Source: Podarcis muralis (taxonomy: Eukaryota). Taken from it: a stretch of DNA of 64,000 bases. A program made the position numbers and the translations under genes. Location of the stretch: positions 20,150,001-20,214,000 of the forward strand of contig NC_135667.1 in NCBI RefSeq assembly GCF_964188315.1. The letters are read 5' to 3'. The notes below the pieces were generated by a model. The model had not been told where the DNA came from and did no database searches. It saw only the letters and a list, made by a program, of their open reading frames with translations. Shown here piece after piece: positions 8,543-62,343 of this stretch (the first letter of the stretch is position 1; each line of letters opens with the position of its first letter).

Positions 8543-10914
8543 GCATCCATGAAAATGAAGGTGTTAGTGGGGCAGGGGAAACACAAAATGCGTTATATCT
8601 GGGGGAATTGCATTGCAAAAATGTGTATGTCAGTCAAAGCTGCATATAAAAATGTGTTTCTCAGAAAGAAAAATTGCACTAAAAAGCTGGTGAAATTTCG
8701 TAAGGATTTTTCATTAAAAGCACTCACACACACACACAAATGCCTGCAAAATGTGGGGAACTGAATTTAAGACTGGAAAAATGAGAAACAGAGGGGAACT
8801 GGAATGAAAAGATCTTTTTCATCCCTAGCCCACACAGAGAGCTTCGTGGGAAGCATGGACATGCCTCCTACTTTACGAAACCCAGTCCTCCCTTTTAAGG
8901 CGTCTTCTATGAAATAGAGGAGCCAGTCCTAGCAAGCCTCCCATGTCAAGGAACAATCAGGAGGGTGTGACATGGAAATGGCCCCATGGACCAAGCTGAG
9001 ACCCATGCGGAGTCTCGCTAGGCCCACAAACAGAAAGTTCCCCGTCCCTTTGTCTGTTTGAAGGGTTGTCTCACCCAGGTCAAGTTTAAGACTGGAAGAC
9101 AATAAGTTGCCTTGAAATTGCCAGTTAACAGTTAGCACCCTCCTGATTGGTTTGAGCAGGCAGTCACCCAGGTCACCTTCTCTACTATGGTGAGATTCAT
9201 AGATCCATAAAGGGACCCCCCAGGGACATCTAGTCCAACCCCTGCAATGCAGAATCCCTGCCCACAGCCATCCCTGGGTGGGCTCAAACTACCAACCTTC
9301 TGGTTAACAGCCAGACGCACTGACCCAGATGTATTGCAAAAATAATAGAAATTATTTCTAATACTGCGTCTATCCATATAAGTTAGCAGGCGTGTGCAGT
9401 TTTTATGCAAACCTCTATCCTCGTTTGTCCACTTTCTTGACAATGCACTTCATTTGGAACTACATGTGAGCAGCCAAGGTAGACCTCACCTACATTTAAA
9501 GCAGCATCATGTCGCCTGAAACAGTCATGGCTTCCCCCAGAGAATCCTGGGAACTGTAGTTTGTTAAGGCTGATGAGAGCTGTCAGGAGACCCCTATTCC
9601 CCTTACAGTGCTACCGTTCCCAGAGGGTTGAACAGTCAATCCCTCTTCCCAGGGAACTCATACAATTGTAGCTCTCTGAGGGGAATAGGGGTCTCCTCTC
9701 AGGGTGCTTAACAAACTGCAGCTCCCAGGATTCACTGGAGGAAGCCATGACTGTTTAAAGTGGTATGATGCTGCTTTAAATGCGTAGTGTGGATGGGGCC
9801 TGAGTCTGGGTCTAGCCCATTCTAACCCCAATTTTACAGATTTCGCAACTGAGGCTGATAGATGCCAGCTTGCTTAGGGTCACCCAAAAGCCACAAGTTC
9901 TCCCAGGTCCATGATTTCATACTGGTCTGTGAGCTACTCGACCCCAGCGCCCTTCTGGAGAATCCAGGATTGGAATTGCAATCAACTAATCCCTCCACAA
10001 ACAGGGATGGGGTGGCGCTGTGGGTTAAACCACTGAGCCTCTTGGGCTTGCCAATCAGAAGGTTGGCGGTTCGAATCCCCACAATGGGGTGAGCTCCCAT
10101 TGCTCGGTCCCTGCTCCTGCCAACCTAGCAGTTTGAAAGCACATCAAAGTGCAATTAGATAAATAGGGAAGGTAGGGAAGGTAAGCGGCGTTTCCATGCG
10201 CTGCTCTGGTTCGCCAGAAGCGGCTTAGTCATGCTGGCCACATGACCGCTGTACGCCAGCTCCCTCGGCCAGTAAAGTGAGATGAGCGCCGCCACCCCAG
10301 AGTCGGCCACGACTGGACCTAATGGTCATGGGTCCCTTTACCTTCACCTAATCCCTCCAAAAAAACCCACACAGGCATAGGAAGATGCCTCATCCTCCAG
10401 CCCTACCTGGCAAGGCCAAGGGTTGAACCTGAGGCCTTCTGCATGCAAAGCAGATGTTCTACCCATGAGCCACAGCCCTTCCCCTGTCTGAAAGCCCAGG
10501 AGAAGCACCTTCACCTTTGGGTTTCATCAGCATAATGGCCACTCCCTGAGCTGCAGTCTCCCATTGCTGACTTCCTCCAGACTCCTCAATGTCAACCTCA
10601 GGAAACTTGAAAGGAGCAGCCTCCATCTTCTCTTGGGGAAGCCTGGGTTTCTCTGTCTGTGGGCTGGAGACCGAGGGCTCCTTGTGGTCCTGGTCCTGCT
10701 GCGTCAGGGAAGATTTGGGCGAAGATGTCGCGTCAGTGGCGTCTGACGTGGGACCTTGCGTGGATTCGGGGGATGTCTGTGGGGTGGAGGACCAGGTGGT
10801 GGGGAGAGGTGAAGGAGAGGAGAAAAGGGGCGTGCTGGGAGCTTCGTCGGTGGTAGCGTGGCTTGCACCCAGGAACAGCAGCAGCAGGCAAGCGAGAAGG
10901 TGGTTCAGATCCAT
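6920..10914 (-). CDS. GFY: Golgi-associated olfactory signaling regulator (Goofy), about 280 aa type I membrane protein
   Basis: Exons 10914-10515, 8315-8139 and 7185-6920 join in frame (843 nt, AG/GT sites, phase 1-1). Signal peptide MDLNHLLACLLLLFLGASHA, S/T/P-rich lumenal domain, TM GLFLAGCGLLLCLFIGVYCAY, tail HHRLYEDGFDDPALFLDSPKDYDWFFY...LECLSPANLRTGNFI resembling mammalian GFY (..LEALSPATLPNNFV, from memory). Head-to-head with PTH2 as in mammals. The 10515 donor is the less certain boundary. Confidence 0.85.
8502..8539. repeat. (TG)n microsatellite
   Basis: Seen directly. Confidence 0.95.
9485..9800. mobile_element. Long palindromic MITE, PIF/Harbinger-like
   Basis: Long inverted arms (ttaaagcagcatcat...cagtcatggcttcc / ggaagccatgactg...atgatgctgctttaa) ending in gtgtggatggggcc; related fragments occur near 13060, 20400 and 48270. 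Confidence 0.6.
10002..10347 (+). mobile_element. Sauria SINE
   Basis: tRNA-like head (gtggcgctgtgggttaaacc...ggttcgaatccc), Sauria core, (acctt)n tail; TSD ctaatccctcca on both sides. Confidence 0.9.
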
Positions 10915-11344
10915 TTTCAAACTGCCAGACCAGGGAGTCTCTGCAGAGGAAGATGAAACGCTGACCTGTGGCACAATACAAACCGAGGAGATCTTACACA
11001 CATAATACAGGAGCAAACCCAGGAGGGCAAGTGGGACATCCATGGAACACAAAGCCATGACCACCCCCAAAGACCGAGGCCACCTCCAGACCACCCCTGT
11101 TTTGTGGGAGGGACTCAATCGCAGACCGGAAATGTAGGTTTGCTTTAGTCAGATTTATTTGTTGAAAACCTTTGGTGGTCACAAAAATACAAGCAGCACA
11201 GGAGTGAACAGAAAACAGATGGTCCCCACCAGTGCACAGGACCCCGTGATGGAGAGTGAAATTGTGTCTGGTCTGCCGAGCTGCTAAGGGGAACATCGAA
11301 ACCTTAGATGTAGCATAGTACATATAGTCCATATGAACCTACCC

Positions 11345-30300: not shown

Positions 30301-30795
30301 GGCAATATGGGGACTCCTCCTCGGTTCCAATCTACTTGATCCCTCCTCTGGAGAACTCAGGTTTCCTATACTTTTTCTCCCAGCAGGCTCTGGAGACGTG
30401 AAGTGTCCCAGTATCCTCCAGCAGGGAGCAGCGTTGACCTCAAAGGAGCCCCTGTTCCCTGGAGCCTCCGCATCCCATCCACTACCTTGCATGACTGGAT
30501 GCTCAAGTGGATGTCCTCAGATGTCACCGCCCCCTGGGCTGAGGACAATGAAGAGGAAGGGCGAAACAGGAAGTCCCGCCTGTGGGGCCCAATGAGACAG
30601 GAAGCTCCGTCTCCTAGGGGCCAGAAGGTGGCGCTGTACCAAGCCAGCTGGGTTCCAGGTTGGGGCGGGAAGCGAAGTATTGTGCTAGCGGATGATGCCG
30701 CCTTCAGGGAGAAAAGCAAGATGCTGACAGCCATGGAGAGGCAGAAATGGCTCAACTCCTACATGCAAAAGCTTTTGGTGGTGAACTCTGAGTAG
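27364..30795 (+). CDS. PTH2: Parathyroid hormone 2 / TIP39 precursor, 170 aa
   Basis: Exon 27364-27467 (signal peptide MEAAFGACKSPRATLVILSSCLLLSSGAVV, AG|gtaagt) joins exon 30387-30795 in frame. After KR comes a 39-aa peptide SIVLADDAAFREKSKMLTAMERQKWLNSYMQKLLVVNSE (30676-30792), clearly TIP39. Confidence 0.96.
29400..29636. mobile_element. Tc1/mariner (Tigger/pogo-like) MITE in the PTH2 intron
   Basis: TIR CCGTATTTTTCGCTCTATAAGAC / GTCTTATAGAGCAAAACATATGG; near-identical body at 46127-46384. Confidence 0.75.
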
Positions 30796-43444: not shown

Positions 43445-43958
43445 TGTTGTGGTTATTCCCCACCCATCTGGGCAGCTTCCAGCAATATATAAAAAATAAT
43501 AAAATGTCAAACGTTAAAATCTTCCCAATACAGGGCTGCCTTTGGATGTCTTCTAAAAGTTGTGTAGTTCTTTATCTCCTTGACATCTGATGGGAGGGCG
43601 TCCCACAGGGAGGGCGCCACTGCTGAGAAGCAGATGCTGAGAATGTTGACTGTGTGGTGGGTAAACTACAGTTCCCAGAATTCTTTGGGAGAAGTCATGT
43701 GCTTTAACTGTATGGTGTGTTTATAGCCTATATCTCTGGGGCAGATTAGTCAAAGGGAGGGGTATTCTCTCAAAAGGGGGGGGCTGAGCTCTCAAATGGC
43801 TGTGCAACGGGCACAGCTGTTTGGGGCACCAGATTGTATTAAGGTGGCTTTGTGTCAGGAATATAGCAGAATCTTGTATGTGTGTGGGATGGGGAGGGGT
43901 CTGAGGGGTGGTGGCAGCAGCAAGCAAATCCGAAGGGTGCAGGCTGGAGGCCAGGCCG

Positions 43959-46900
43959 CTACTGCCGCAAGGACTCTTCCTCCGACAGCAAGAGGGGCAG
44001 GCGTGAAACAGCTCTTTGATCTGTAAAAGACAAGAGAGAAGAGATTTGATTTTCCAGGTTTCCAGCCCTATCCTGCCCTGCTCCACACAGAGCTCCCAGC
44101 ATTCCTTGTTCCAAAACAGAGAAGATTCAGAACCAGGTTTCCCAACTCCCTAAAAAAAATGCCCCTCTTCTCCCAGAGAATCCAGCATCTGTCCGTACCT
44201 TGGGGGTTCAGGTAGGTTAGAAAATCCATCAGCGTTTGAAAGGTGCCATCATCTAAGGAGCGCAGAGCATGTGCTGAAAGACAGGTGACAGGCAAGTGTT
44301 ATAGGAATTCTAAGGTCTTATATATGAAAAATAAATGTTCATAAATTTACAAGGCAAATACATACATAAGTATATAAACTAAGGTTACCAGATACTTTTC
44401 AATGAATCCAGGGACACTTTTCAACTTCAATGGATTTTGTATAGGGACTGATTTGTAAATCTGAAGACTGTCCCCAGAAAACGGGGATGTCTGGTAACCT
44501 TAATATAAACCACGTGCCTGAAATAGTACAGGAGAACCCATCCTGAAGCCATTTTGACTCTTCCAGCAACCTCAAATATTCTCCCCACTGTCTCTTTGCT
44601 CACAAATCCTGTCTTAAGGACATATTTGTGTTATGAATAGGGTGAGCCTGTGACCTGAATTCAGGAACTAAGTATTTAGCATCTCAAAAGGAACGGCCAG
44701 GCTGCGAAGGTAAAACAATCAGTGACCATTATCAGTATCCTGCCAGACAGGATTTCTGCTGGAGTCCACGCCCTTCAGTAATGTACCGGTATGTATGATG
44801 TGGAGGAGGGGGGTCCTCAAACTACAGGGTGGGCAATTTCAAAAGTCTATATAAGGGCTTGCACACCATTGTTCGGGGTTCCTCTCCTCCCTCCCTACGT
44901 GGGTTGAGTGGGGGACCCTGTTGCAACAGTTTAATAAAGATCAGGCTTACTAGCTGCTTTGCTTCTCAATATTTTCTGGCTGGCCTCAGGGAAAAGGGCA
45001 GAGAATTCAGTGAAAGGGTGCTCACCCAAGGAATCCTGCCCTACGGAATACAAGTCCTCCATAGCATCTCGCTTATGCGCCAGGCTCCCTTTGTTGGACA
45101 GTGTCTGGTGAGCATCTGCTTTGGGGAGAGGAGAGTGCAAGGGGAGAAGTGCTGCAGGTTACATAGGAGGAAAAATACAGATTACATCAGGTTTGTGAAC
45201 AGCCTTTTGGCTAGTGGCACATAAGAACCACCCCTTAGCTACCAGGCAGGACGTTTTCATACATTGGAATATAACTTGTTCTTTCCTCTTATGCCATCAA
45301 CGGGCTATAAACGAACTAACATGGATCCGGGAGGTTATGCGGAGCAGTAGCAATCTCTGAGGACTAGCAACTTGTGCAGACTTAACTTGCACGCCTGCCT
45401 GTCTGGATTACACTACAGAAAACTAATTTAAAGAGTGAGGAGATTGAATTTATGATGATAAGGATGACGGATCGGAAGTATTTTCCCTCCCTCCTTGTTT
45501 TCCTCCAAAGACTTATTGCAAGGGTGTACACCAAGTTTCATCAAAATCCAAGACGGTGGGTGACAAAACCCTTGTTTTTTGCGTTGATTTGATATGGAAT
45601 GACCCGTTGGGCAGCTGCCTAAGAAGAGGACTGGCTGGATCAGACCAAGGGCCTTTCTAGTTCTGCTTTCTGTTCTCACAGCGGCCAGACAGATGCTTCA
45701 GGCAGGAGATGGCTGCAGCAGCACTCTTCCCCCTAAGGAAGTTGCCTTAGAGCTAGTCAGTAGGAATGGACAAAGCTGTCCATGATTTTGACTTCTCTCA
45801 GTTTCTCATTTTTCTCAGTTCTACACATTCATTCATTCATTCATTTTGCCTGTTCTCAATTTCTTTTGAGCCCCATGGAAAGTTGCCAGCATATCGGTGC
45901 AAGTATCGCCTCAAAGGCACATTTTTAATATGCAAATTTGCCCGATATACACATTTCTGCAAGACATCATGCCTTTTATACATTCGTTTTTACCGACACA
46001 CGCATTTTTAGGCACACTTTCAAATCCCATAATAACAATACACGTATGCTTGGGTTGGAGAGACGCATCCTGCAATTTGGAGAAGTGCGTATTTCGAGAA
46101 ATAGCTGTGTTTCGGTTCAAAGATTACCGTATTTTTCGCTCTATAAGACGCACCAGACCATAAGATGCACCTAGTTTTTGGAGGAGGAAAACAAGAAAAA
46201 AAAATTCTGAATCTCAGAAGCCAGAACAGCAACAGGGATCGCTGCACAGCGAAAGCAGCGATCCCTCTTGCTGTTCTGGCTTCTGGGATAGCTGCGCAGC
46301 CTGCATTCGCTCCGTAAGATGCACACACATTTCCCCTTACTTTTTAGGAGGGAAAGGCTGAGTCTTATAGAGAAAAAAATACAGTAATTCAGAAAGTGTG
46401 AAATAAGCAGCTTTGCATTAAAAACCCAACTTATTCCTCCCCACACTCCTACAAAACCAGACCATTGGCCCATCTGCCTCAGTGCTGCCTGAAGCGGCTG
46501 ACAGCAGCTCTTCAGAGTTTCAGTCTCTCCCTGCCTTACTTGGAGATGTTGGGGATCGAACCCGGGACATTCTGCATCCCAAGCAGATGCTCTCCCTCTG
46601 AGCTACTGCCCTTCCCAGGAGAGGCATCTGCGCTGGCATTCCAGCAGCTGCCCATGGGTGCTGCACACTCATGCCAGGCCTGGAAGATGGCTTCCCTAAC
46701 AACAGAAATATTTCTCTGAGAGCTGAAGTGGTTATGCTAAAGGCATCGTTATGCCATCTCTAGTCCAACAGGATTTGCAGGTTTTCTGAAGCACCGGGGA
46801 AATAAACCAGCAAAGGTTTATTTGAGTAGAGAGGACAGAGGCATGGACGAAAAGGGGGCGTATTCCGCAAGCAATGGTGGCTCTCACAGGCCTTCTGCTT

Positions 46901-49376
46901 GGCTGTCACAGTCAGAGGCGGCAAGCATCCTCTGAGCATCAGATGCTGGGAATCATAAGTGGGGGGAGCTGCTCTCGCACTCAGGTCCTGCTTACGGGCT
47001 TCCCTGGTTGGCCACTGTGAGAATGGGATGCTGGATTAGATGGGCTATTGGCCTGATCCAGCAGGCCTCTTATTTTGTTCTTCATTATTATTAACTATTT
47101 ATTTATTAAATTTGTATACTGCCCTATAGCAGAGGATCTCAGGGCAGTTCACAACATAAAATTACTACACACACACACACACACAATGACAACTCCCGGA
47201 CCTGCTTCCACACACGGTGGCAGATACCTTATAGTGCAATCTTAGGCACTTCGACTCAGAAGGAGGTACCATGGAGTTCAATGGGATTTAACCCCCAGGG
47301 AAAGGTAACTTCAGCTTCCAATATCATTTCATTCTTCTCCTTGCCCTTTGGCCACATACCCTCCAAAATTTCTCCGATGAAAATAGGGACGTCCCATTCC
47401 ATAATGATAATTTCATACCCCACACATCCTACTCGGTTGCCCCAACCACTCTGGGCAGCTTCCGACTTATATAATAACATCATTAAACATTTTAAAATTT
47501 TTCCCTATACAGGATTGCCTTCAGACGGCTTGGGGATCGGATAACTCCAGACCCTCCAACATTTCTCCAATGAAAATAGGGACATTCTAAGGAAAAGCGG
47601 GACATTCCAGGATCAAATCCGAAACTGGGACAGCTTCTCTAAATCAGGGACGTCCCTGGAAGACAGGGACACTTGGAGGGTCTGTGGCCGTATCTTTCTC
47701 ATGCCAAGCAAATCCTGACTTGACTTACGATGTCCCAAGAGGTATCCAGCGCTGTTCAGGGTCCAGCCGCGTTTGTCCTTGGGCTGCACATGCAACAAGA
47801 GGAAAAGTCCCCTGAAACTAAGCCTGCCAACAGTGAGTCAGAGGGTGACATTTGCTATGGAGAAACCTTCTGTGGATGGAGGGATACATGCCAGTACAGT
47901 TGTACCTCGGTTTAAGAACAGCCCTGTTTATGAACTATTCGGTTTACAAACTCCACAAAACCAGAAGTACTGTCCCGGTTTGCGAATTTTACCTCTGTCT
48001 AAGAACGGAAGCTGAACGGTGGAAGGCCTCATTAGGGAAAGCACACCTCGGTTTAAGAACGGTTGCAGTTTAAGAATGGACTTCCAGAACGGATTAAGTT
48101 CGTAAACCGAGGTACCACTATAGTGGCTTACACCATAGACAAAAGTGGGTGGGGCTAGAGATGGGCAGGGCCAGAGACAAAGGTGGGTGGGGTTAGAGAC
48201 CAAACTGGGCGGAGCAAAGGATGTAACTGTCACCCTTGCACGATAGGGCCACATTTGCACCTTACTTTTAAAGCACGATTATGCCATTTTAATGGGCCAT
48301 GGCCTCCACTATAGAATCTGGGGAATGGTCATTTATTCAGGGTGCTGAAAGTGTAAGGCGATCCCTCTTCCCCTCACAGAACTGCAGTTGGCAGAGTGGT
48401 TTAACAGTCAATCCCTCTTTCTGAAGAACTCTGGGAACTGTAGCTCTGTGAGAGGGGGAAAGGGTTCCCTAACAACTCTGAGCACTACAGCTCCCAAGAT
48501 TTTCTAGGGGAAGCCAAGACCATTCACATAATTTAATGGTGCTTTAAATATATGGTGCAGATGCATGGGCATAGCCAGGATTTTTGTTGCGGGGAGCAGA
48601 ACATCAGTTTGCTATGTACCTTAATTGATTTTTATTGATTCAGGGGGGCAACTGCCCCTCCCCCCCCCCGGCTACGCCCATGCGCAGATGTGACCTAAAC
48701 TTCAACCACACAAAAGTCAGAGGTTTCTACACACTCTCTCTCTGTGTGTGTGTCTCATTTTCTCTCTCACACACAGAATAGCTGGGAAATAGTTGGGGTA
48801 GAATCTTTATCCCTGATATATGGTACAGTATTTACTTTGTATCTGCAAGGATTTTTCGTTTGCTTTTAAAGTGTTGGAGTAATCAAAACTGGGGTTTTAT
48901 ATGGACCATACATTTTCCTCCCACCCCACCAAGAATTCTGGGAACTGTGGTTTACCCCTTGCAGAACGACAGTTCACAACACCATTCACAAACTACAATT
49001 CCCAAGATTTGGGGGGGGGGGTGCTTTAAATGCCTGATATGTCTGCAGAACCTGCTTAGTAAGTTGCTTAGAAGCCTATTTTGAAATTAAGCCTATATAC
49101 ATTAAAAACAAACAAACTGCGCCACCTGCAACAGTCTGAACTGATGCAGTTCCATCTTGCCACTTCATTTCTGCTGCATGTGAGGACCAGCCCAGCCCAT
49201 GCAGGCGATCAGGAGGGACGGAGGGAGGCCAGTGACAGCTCTCTATCAAGTAGGGTTGATGGGGTGGGGTGGGGGGGGGCAGTGTAACTCACCACCAGAA
49301 CGGTTCCACAGCATTCCCCAAGTAGCCCGCAGAGGAGCAAAGATGCACAGAGCACAGATTGAGAGCTCCACATCAT
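43959..49376 (-). CDS. GALP: Galanin-family prepropeptide (GALP/GAL paralog), 121 aa
   Basis: Exons 49376-49293 (84 nt, signal peptide MMWSSQSVLCASLLLCGLLGECCGTVLV), 47783-47729 (55 nt, PKDKRGWTLNSAGYLLGH), 45115-45026 (90 nt, HAHQTLSNKGSLAHKRDAMEDLYSVGQDSL), 44273-44199 (75 nt, AHALRSLDDGTFQTLMDFLTYLNPQ, GMAP-like) and 44020-43959 (DQRAVSRLPLLLSEEESLRQ*). All have AG/GT sites and join in frame (366 nt). Family assignment is firm; GALP rather than GAL is inferred from synteny. Confidence 0.9.
46127..46384. mobile_element. Tc1/mariner MITE (second copy of the 29400 element)
   Basis: TA|CCGTATTTTTCGCTCTATAAGAC ... GTCTTATAGAGAAAAAAATACAG|TA. Confidence 0.8.
47897..48120. mobile_element. Tigger-like MITE
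   Basis: TA|CAGTTGTACCTCGGTTTA ... TAAACCGAGGTACCACTA|TA. Confidence 0.75.
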
Positions 49377-54842: not shown

Positions 54843-56449
54843 GGGCTTTGTGCACGCAAACTGTGAAAGCAAACACATTGTGCCACCCTGCTCTTAGTAA
54901 GATGACTGTGCTCTTAATAACTGGATCACAATGTTGTTCTCCCAGCTGCCGTGCAGCTAGGATAAGCCGTATAGCCCAAAGCCCTGGTCTCCCCCACTCC
55001 CACATGGCTTCATGTATCTCCAAGGCCAGTGCTGGCTCCAGGATTTCAGTTTGGCCCCCTGTAACCTGGAAGAGGTGGGACATGCAAACTGGGAGTTCTC
55101 TTAGGGCACTTCAGAACTGTTGCTATATGCAAGGTGGGGTTCCATCCCACAGTGACCAATTCAGGTTGTCCAATCGAAGTGGATTTGGAGGTCTTGAACA
55201 ACAAACCCGCTTCCCCCAAAAGAGCAGACTTTTTGTGAAAAATGAAGAGGAAATTCATCAGAAGGTACGGGAGAACAATTGTCTGACACGTCGCATAATG
55301 TCCTCACATACAGATCAGAATTGATGCTCAATAAGAGCCAATGTCGCCTAGCCTCTCCATAAACTCTGCAAACAAATCAGGATGAACGCTCAGTAAATAG
55401 GTCATCTGGATGCAACTGCAGGCTACATCTAATCGTCTTAGATACTTTGTGCCAAGTCAAAATGATAGCACTGTTAGGGCAACAACAGTCCCTCTGCTGG
55501 TTTGGGGGGGGCCCTGGCTGCCCTCTAGCCCTGGCAGGGCAAGAGGCAGGGATGAGAAGGTAGGTCAAGATTTTCTGATAGATCTCAGGATGATCGACAG
55601 GCATTTCTGACTCCCAGGCGTTTAATGACAGCAGCAGCAAAACATCTCCTCCCATCCCTTCTCCGAAATAAATCGCTGAAATGAAGAAAACTTGTGGATG
55701 GGGAACCAGGAACTATTTGCATTTGAAAGGACTGTGTGATCCAGTTCTGGGTCAGAAAACAAATTCCAGGACTGAAATGTGCCCAGGGGCACCCTGGCAC
55801 TTGGTTCAAAGTGTGCATGAGTCCTCTATGCCATCATTCCTCACCTTGTTCTGGCTGGTGGATCCTGATGTTCTAGTTCAAAACAAAACAAAACATAGTT
55901 ATGCCGAGTCTGCAGCTTGCCTGCTCCTTGTCGTCTAAGGCAATACATCTTTATTTGTGGACTCGGAGTCACTTCCATCATCTGATGCATAAAATGCAAT
56001 CCTTTGTTGCAGGGATACAGACACGTAGTTTTTAGGGTGGGTATGTTAAGCCGCGGGCTCAAGGGGAAATGAAATGCAAGAGAAGGGACGACAATTCAGT
56101 TGGAGCTGGAGTGTCTGCGAAATAAGCGAAGCGGCCCTTTTGCAGCAGCCCTGAGCAGTGATAGGATAAATAACAAGGGTGTTTTAATGAGGATCCGCAG
56201 CAGGAAAGGAACCCACGGTCTCTATTCAATCCCAAATAAGCAGAGGTAAACTCTCCAAAGTCTAACCTGCTTTACTTTGGATAACTCAGTCGTTAGAGGA
56301 TGAGTGGCCAAAAGATTCCTGCATTGCAGGGGTTGGACTAGATGACCCTCGGGGTCCCTTCCGACGCCACAGTTCTATGATTCTGCACATGCCCACCGCC
56401 CAGCTATCCCGACACAGCGCCGCCTCTGTGAAATCCATGGGGCTACTCC

Positions 56450-57520
56450 CTAGCCAACCTGCAGCGCCAGCCGTCAAATTTGCCTGAATCCATTAAGCCT
56501 CCCCGGGGAGGGAGAGAACCAGAGAGCGAGGGGGGGGAGGGCGCTGGCCCTTTAAATCTCACCCGCCCCGCCTCCCGCAAGCCCGTCCATGCCAACCTCC
56601 GGCGGACGCTCTTCCCTCCCGTCGCCGCCCTAGTCCTCCAGCCCATCCGGCAGCTTCTCTAGCCGCACCCATTCCCCTCGACTCTATGGCGCCACCCGAC
56701 TCCGATTGGCCAATCCGGGGCGGCGGCGCGCTCTTATTGGCCGGGCGGCTCAGCCCGGCGGGGCGCGGAGGGGAGCTGTCAGGCTGCGGAGGGAGGGGTT
56801 TTCCGCTGCCGGCCCAGGGCCCTGAGAGCGCGCGCCGCCGCCGCCGCTGGCCCCCCTTCCCTCCCGCATGGGGGGTGCCTGAGACCCCGAGCCCGTCTTC
56901 CCCCTCCCCGTAGGGCGGGTGAGTGCCAAGAGGGGCGGGGGCGGGTGATTGACAGCAGCCCCCCCCAAAGGGGATGCAGGGCGTGGGGGGGGCGCTTGGA
57001 AGGGCAGCGGAGGGCGAGAGGGCAGGGCGCGGCGGGGGGGGGGGGCTTCCCTTCTGCAAGGGCCGCCGGGTTGGCGCTGGGTCCCCGGCCCCTGGAGGCG
57101 CGCAGCCATTGTGGGGTTGCGCCAGGGTGGGGCACCTGCTTAGCAAAAGCGGTGCATAAACATGGCAAGGTGGCTGCTTCTGCGCGCGCAGCCGGGGTAG
57201 GGCTCCGGGAGGGCAGATGCCTGCCTGCCTGCGGGAGGGCGAGGGCAGAAAGAGGGCTGGCAGCTGCGCGAGGCGTGTTGCAATACCGACCGAGGGAGCC
57301 CGGGACTGGCTCCACCCATCCCCGCCGCCGCCTCTTTTCTCCCGAGCAGCCCAGCCTTCTTCCTCGTCCCGGGTTTCCCACGTGCGTGGTTTGTGCCCGC
57401 ATCCCCCCTCTTCCTTGGCCAGCGTCCGCGATCCCTTCCTGCTTCTTCTTCTCCCAGGTGGGCCGCATCTGACGGAGGAATATTGACTTTTGCTTGCATG
57501 GAGTGTTAGGGTGGGTTGGG
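56450..57520 (+). promoter_or_regulatory. CpG island / promoter and probable non-coding exon 1 of the RAS gene
   Basis: Very GC- and CpG-rich; palindromic double CCAAT GATTGGCCAATC at 56704-56715, GC box 56717-56723, ATTGG 56736-56740; strong donor GG|gtgagt at 56918. Confidence 0.75.

Positions 57521-58732: not shown

Positions 58733-62343
<3,611 letters not shown>

Follow-up and report, generated by a model that had tools for sequence, protein, structure and literature searches.

A second galanin-family prohormone gene of the wall lizard, a probable GALP ortholog with a galanin-like precursor

The wall lizard Podarcis muralis has a second galanin-family prohormone gene, which RefSeq names "galanin peptides-like" and which lies on the minus strand of the stretch of DNA analysed here (contig NC_135667.1, positions 20,150,001 to 20,214,000; 64,000 nucleotides, hereafter the window). 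We consider it quite likely that this gene is, on the strength of the literature, the ortholog of GALP and that it has kept an ancestral galanin-like layout. The gene is transcribed and spliced, and it belongs to an ancient lineage of jawed vertebrates that is separate from GAL; the orthology of this lineage with mammalian GALP, for which we rely on published work, is probable. The gene is already annotated and its evolutionary interpretation is already published, so that its isoform structure and the changes specific to lacertid lizards, both described below, are small additions.

Gene model, transcripts and annotation

In the window sequence, five minus-strand exons between 49376 and 43959 join into 366 nt encoding a precursor of 121 residues, and all four introns are of the GT..AG type with a pyrimidine tract before the acceptor. 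Coding exon A (49293-49376, minus strand; 84 nt, 28 codons) encodes the signal peptide and lies between a CAG acceptor and a GTGAGT donor; as stated in a preliminary description of the window, the canonical ATG stands at the exon start, its letters being the first bases after the acceptor. Coding exon B (47729-47783, minus strand; 55 nt, phase 0 to 1) encodes PKDKR, then GWTLNSAGYLLG, and then His13, which replaces Pro13. Coding exon C (45026-45151, minus strand), which has three acceptors at 45115, 45118 and 45151 and is 90 nt long in its short form (45026-45115), encodes what remains of the peptide together with the second KR, and the GMAP-like part begins in it. The GMAP-like core with the motif MDFLTYL is encoded by coding exon D (44199-44273, minus strand; 75 nt), and coding exon E together with the 3' untranslated region occupies 43900-44020 (minus strand), of which 43959-44020 (62 nt) are coding and include the stop codon TAG at 43959-43961. 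The short precursor begins with a hydrophobic N-terminus (core at residues 7-20), followed by KR at 32-33, a 27-residue peptide starting with GWTLNSAGYLLG, a second KR at 61-62 (73-74 in the long form) and the tail. This is a prohormone layout as read from the sequence, with a hydrophobic signal-like core and dibasic sites flanking the peptide, and the joined reading frame bears out the galanin-type architecture of signal peptide, KR, peptide, KR and GMAP-like segment that had been proposed for it.

RNA evidence was taken from three sets of run contigs, each holding ~5-8% of the window's words, and from one raw RNA run (X19); the sources were two studies of Podarcis muralis, the species of set X1, and one of a related species (X9). 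In an 847-nt contig of set X1, positions 317-406 correspond to 45026-45115 and positions 482-602 to 43900-44020, and the 75 letters between them equal the length of exon D. A 704-nt contig of set X9 lies on 45026-45151 and 43912-44020, again with 75 letters between, and its first 133 letters match in length the 55 nt of exon B together with 78 nt belonging to exon A. Pieces from all three sets (X1, X5 and X9) stop at 44020, the boundary of exon E. The bin depths of exons C, D and E in set X1 (3.07, 2.49 and 4.13) fit exon length multiplied by a contig depth of 6.35, and that of exon A (3.44) corresponds to 85 nt at the same contig depth; in set X9 the bin depths of exons C, D and E are 3.15, 1.83 and 2.73 at a contig depth of 4.66. 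For exon B, the RNA support consists solely of the contig-length arithmetic because its bin is swamped by repeat-derived contigs. The preliminary description had joined five short exons into a 121-residue precursor and had named RNA support of the junctions as a check. The GT-AG introns and the spliced contigs bear out this model, in that the contigs fit the boundaries of exons C, D and E exactly and the depths match exons A, C, D and E. The 3' untranslated region reaches beyond 43900, by ~245 nt in the contig of set X1, and a search up to 400 nt from the stop codon revealed no canonical poly(A) signal. Separately, the intronic repeats at 46125-46390 and 47000-48120 reach depths in the thousands in all RNA-type runs, with strand-switch joints at 46153/46345; they represent transposable elements that are expressed and have no relation to the gene.

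The 121-residue form exists, but it is one of several products, because exon C has additional acceptors and two upstream exons exist. The acceptor at 45115, which is the edge of exon C in the contig of set X1, gives the 121-residue precursor with a 27-residue peptide; the tandem acceptor at 45118, 3 nt upstream, gives 122 residues and a 28-residue peptide; and the acceptor at 45151 (AG at 45153-45152) adds 36 nt in frame and gives 133 residues and a 39-residue peptide. The long form thereby gains 12 proline/leucine-rich residues, PLLPLHSPLPKA, directly after residue 13, and this insert (45116-45151, minus strand) is a translation of the pyrimidine tract that precedes the acceptor in the shorter form. 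Of the three RNA data sets, X5 and X9 show use of the long acceptor, and the annotations of squamates, Podarcis muralis included, contain all three acceptor forms. Lacerta carries the 36-nt extension without a single difference, and the insert is kept as coding sequence in squamates from geckos to snakes, with no such annotated extension in alligator or turtles.

Upstream of exon A lies a 28-nt exon (55845-55872, minus strand) that is identical to exon 2 of Lacerta agilis isoform X3 and has kept its AG/GT flanks; the RNA alignment extends two bases beyond exon A, as expected of an upstream exon that ends in AG. The first exon (~56597-56745, minus strand) is identical to exon 1 of Lacerta and lies in a CpG-rich island (GC 0.61). 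Its 5' limit is inferred from the contig of set X1, in which the 177 letters preceding exon A agree with 28 + 149. An in-frame ATG in this exon (56646-56644) gives an isoform of 159 residues, RefSeq isoform X2, and would place 26 basic, hydrophilic residues before the signal peptide. In total, the gene has seven exons spanning ~13 kb, of which five are coding from the canonical ATG.

Searches were made exon by exon, and joined models were compared locally with the retrieved proteins. An exhaustive search with a 30-residue exon B reference gave nine matches at E <=0.001, including the "galanin peptides-like" ortholog of Rhineura, and the Rhineura protein as a query led to 620 relatives; word searches with stop-free stretches around exons B and D gave zero candidates, the length window for exon B (41-130 residues) having excluded the squamate forms of 131-133 residues. 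The 133-residue model from the window is identical to Podarcis muralis XP_028607860.2 (RefSeq isoform X1) and the 159-residue model to XP_077773238.1 (isoform X2), while the 121-residue model differs from XP_028607863.1 (isoform X3) by the single difference L14I; an earlier RefSeq annotation of the gene listed an X2 of 122 and an X3 of 121 residues. Therefore, the gene is not hidden, as had been claimed. Nor was it missed by annotation, although the related suspicion that it is misnamed is fair: RefSeq calls it "galanin peptides-like", in Podarcis muralis and in dozens of other squamates, and not GALP, the RefSeq gene and the gene in the window being the same and differing in name only.

Lineage of the gene and the relation to GALP

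The N-terminal core of the peptide, GWTLNSAGYLLGP, lies above the Pfam gathering cutoff for the Galanin family (PF01296). Specifically, exon B scores 30.7 bits, the cutoff being 20.5, and the match covers profile positions 1-12 of 29 only; exon C gives no match. Compared with galanin sequences in PDB, the start of the peptide is identical at 12 of 12 residues, and residue 13 is His instead of Pro. A precomputed GMAP match (PF06540) is present in many members of the clade described below, and lacertid entries carry PF01296 only. The exon plan of the gene is likewise that of the family: coding exons measure 81, 55, (72), 87, 72 and 62 nt in pike GAL, 78, 55, 90, 75 and 53 nt in the alligator gene and 84, 55, 126, 75 and 62 nt in the Lacerta gene, and exon lengths and phases are common to GAL and to the gene type considered here. 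The 55-nt exon, which had been said to match GAL, is found with phase 0-to-1 in pike GAL as well as in alligator and Lacerta.

We computed a maximum-likelihood tree of 52 rows with one isoform per species, excluding other isoforms and fragmentary predictions. In a motif table of the retrieved proteins (n=147), those of chimaera, coelacanth, gar, bowfin, paddlefish and teleosts have KEKR before the core and the conserved GAL residues 14-29, while those of sharks, bichir, sturgeon, lungfish, amphibians, turtles, alligator and squamates have PKDKR and the continuation PHAH(R/Q)TL..DKGG.AGKR. The tree splits the KDKR-type set from the KEKR-type GAL set with support of 100/99 and places the window protein with Lacerta and Zootoca (100/100), within squamates (100/99) and within sauropsids (100/98). 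Because sharks stand on one side of the split and chimaera on the other, the split predates the radiation of jawed vertebrates, and the tree topology fits an origin of the two types as ohnologs of the two rounds of genome duplication (2R). Accordingly, the family assignment made in the preliminary description stands, and so does its view that the gene is not GAL itself but an ancient second lineage: in our tree, the gene does not group with GAL but with a KDKR-type clade extending from sharks to sauropsids, the neighbours agree, and the lineage is published as GALP.

In the 2023 zebrafish atlas preprint (bioRxiv 10.1101/2023.03.29.534505), Anolis XP_016852185.1 and Xenopus XP_004916350.1 are called GALP, both tree and synteny join non-mammalian GALP genes to Galp of mouse and human, and Anolis has a separate GAL of 140 residues on chromosome 1. 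The Anolis and Xenopus rows of our tree share 90%-identity clusters with these two proteins. As cited in PMC4131245 and PMC5207463, Kim et al. 2014 placed GALP and KISS3 on one 2R paralogon, with coelacanth and Xenopus included. The lizard gene and these non-mammalian GALP genes (also named gal.2, GAL2 or gall; Xenopus gal.2, Anolis XP_016852185.1, zebrafish galp) are members of the same KDKR-type clade and share the PKDKR-GWTLNSAGYLLG start, the exon plan and the GMAP-like tail, and the position of the lizard gene between PTH2 and KRASBL, the latter adjoining KASH5, is that of this group. In Lacerta agilis and Alligator alike the order is KASH5, a 186-residue Ras gene, the galanin-like gene and TIP39. 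The suggestion of an ancestral galanin-like state holds insofar as the lizard gene does have the galanin layout, but it is not new, because a GAL-like form of non-mammalian GALP, GMAP included, is already in print (the bioRxiv preprint and, as far as cited in PMC4131245 and PMC5207463, Kim et al. 2014). Reptiles thus retain a complete galanin layout in the second galanin-family gene that jawed vertebrates possess.

How this gene relates to the GALP of mammals is less direct. Mammalian GALP encodes a peptide of 60 residues in which the core is preceded by an N-terminal extension, and it has alarin as a splice form. It is not known to have a dibasic site directly before GWTLNS or a recognisable GMAP, whereas in the lizard gene KR immediately precedes the core and a GMAP-like tail is present, a departure from the mammalian layout. 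Shared with mammalian GALP are a core like galanin 1-13, a peptide that, as in lacertids, is not amidated and, per published work, the paralogon.

Several points weigh against our reading of the gene. First, the GMAP profile (PF06540), run on the single exon D rather than on the joined protein, gives 12.8 bits (E 0.13), which is under the cutoff of 25. Second, mammalian GALP and tetrapod GAL are not among the 147 retrieved proteins. Third, the neighbours in the window match genes at human 19q13.33, where PTH2 and KASH5 are adjacent, and not the neighbourhood of GALP itself, at 19q13.43; on the human map, the claim of a "GALP locus" therefore holds at the level of the chromosome and not gene to gene. 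Fourth, PMC4992253 argues that the gene in Xenopus and coelacanth is a duplicated GAL ("GAL2"), having GMAP and lacking synteny to human GALP. Finally, the raw bulk RNA run X19 has no reads on the exons, because of which we regard expression as restricted or low.

The argument of PMC4992253, from GMAP content and missing synteny, leads to the alternative that survives best, although we consider it rather unlikely: that the gene represents a "GAL2" lineage lost in mammals, perhaps together with the adjoining KRASBL, and that mammalian GALP is of other origin and not its ortholog. The difference in layout from mammalian GALP speaks for this alternative. In addition, KRASBL was lost in mammals and birds (PMC9882654) and chicken GALP is not in the table of bioRxiv 10.1101/2023.03.29.534505, and neighbouring genes would therefore be missing together from the interval in both groups. 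Against it stand the tree and synteny of that preprint, which put the genes with mouse and human Galp, and the paralogon of GALP and KISS3 that Kim et al. 2014, as cited, extend to coelacanth and Xenopus. Human GALP moreover shares its chromosome arm with PTH2 and KASH5, which also counts against a separate GAL2 lineage. We retain GALP orthology as the preferred reading.

It is very improbable that the gene is the lizard's true GAL. Such a reading could draw on the identity of residues 1-12 with galanin, the layout of dibasic sites flanking the peptide followed by a GMAP-like segment, the same 55-nt exon and intron phases and a last coding exon of 62 nt in both. It is contradicted by the tree, in which the gene is split from the GAL clade; moreover, residues 14-29 of GAL and its KEKR are absent from the gene, whose residues 14-29 are unrelated and preceded by KDKR, as expressed in a Pfam match ending at profile position 12. 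The neighbourhood differs as well: at the one GAL locus compared, that of pike, the neighbours are a Na/H exchanger and a short-chain dehydrogenase rather than PTH2 and KRASBL, and Anolis has its GAL elsewhere. That the gene is a decaying or non-functional copy with a frame open by chance, as the lacertid loss of Pro13 and of the amidation glycine and the low expression in the sampled libraries (none in one run) might suggest, is hardly credible because the frame is intact, splice sites are preserved across genera, three studies contain spliced transcripts, and conservation of the gene extends from sharks to squamates. Between Lacerta and the window, 113 aligned codons have 8 synonymous and 4 non-synonymous differences and all splice signals are kept; the gene is under purifying selection.

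The peptide and its changes in lacertids

The codon of residue 13 is at 47729-47731 and the codon before the second KR at 45074-45076. In Lacerta, Zootoca and three Podarcis species, residue 13 is His and the peptide ends in H-KR without an amidation signal, whereas Rhineura, which represents the sister group of lacertids, and other squamates, apart from agamids at residue 13, have Pro13 and G-KR, as do most members of non-mammalian GALP. Agamids (Pogona, Phrynocephalus) have His13 but retain G-KR; the change of Pro13 to His in agamids is apparently independent of that in lacertids. The amidation glycine was lost in lacertids only, and because Gly is absent before KR, the lacertid peptide cannot be amidated. 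A companion note to the preliminary description had singled out an unusual 27-residue peptide; this peptide is indeed encoded, but it is one of three possible peptides.

In our working model, the precursor would enter the secretory pathway by means of its signal peptide and be cleaved at both KR sites by prohormone convertases, after which carboxypeptidase would trim the basic residues. Depending on the acceptor, a peptide of 27, 28 or 39 residues would be released together with a GMAP-like peptide of ~60 residues. Because its first 12 residues equal galanin 1-12, which bear the receptor-binding residues, we predict that the peptide should be a galanin-receptor agonist.

Relative to other non-mammalian GALP genes, squamates gained the 12-residue proline-rich insert through the upstream acceptor, and the site of this insert, after residue 13, is the site of the alternative exon insertion of GAL. 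Mammalian GALP diverges from galanin after residue 13. It is conceivable, although we find it doubtful, that squamates recruited the pyrimidine tract as coding sequence, adding 12 residues, that lacertids then lost Pro13 and amidation, and that these changes led to a lineage-specific shift in receptor preference, with an elongation paralleling that of mammalian GALP. Losing Pro13 and amidation could have affected receptor choice in lacertids, and in spexin analogues position 13 is reported to influence GALR3 activation (PMC5207463).

An alternative insertion after residue 13 is common to GAL, in which it gives the GAL53 isoform (PMC12749109), and to the lizard gene. We also noted that in lungfish, axolotl and sturgeon some isoforms of the KDKR-type gene are lengthened by ~22-24 residues inserted after residue 13, which resemble the exon 3a insert of GAL (GAL53). 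Because KDKR-type isoforms carry such an insert in these three, the alternative exon may predate the split of GAL and GALP.

Neighbourhood in the window

The TIP39-coding exon of PTH2 lies at 30403-30795 on the plus strand (Pfam TIP39, 94.6 bits), and KRASBL, the fourth classical RAS gene, at 58781-62343 on the plus strand, with a Ras match on three exons and in head-to-head orientation with the galanin-like gene. That the gene adjoins PTH2 and KRASBL had been stated in the preliminary description and agrees with these flanking matches and with the recurrence of the order in Lacerta and Alligator. At the Xenopus locus, no informative neighbour was found within 10 kb, and exon prediction there produced no gene model.

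A span of 32 kb (30403-62343) contains PTH2, the galanin-like gene and KRASBL. Paralogs of the three are grouped on other human chromosomes, with PTHLH, SPX and KRAS on 12p and PTH, GAL and HRAS on 11. The trio, made up of 2R gene families, illustrates the paralogon and bears on the dispute over naming the gene GAL2 or GALP.

The first exon of the galanin-like gene has CCAAT boxes near 56700-56730 and is separated by ~2 kb from the first coding exon of KRASBL on the opposite strand, which suggests a bidirectional promoter region common to the two genes. Finally, an open reading frame of 219 residues at 10459-11118 (minus strand) is Ser/Thr/Pro-rich and has a signal-like start; it has no significant Pfam match and may be a GFY-like gene, GFY being the neighbour of PTH2 in mammals.

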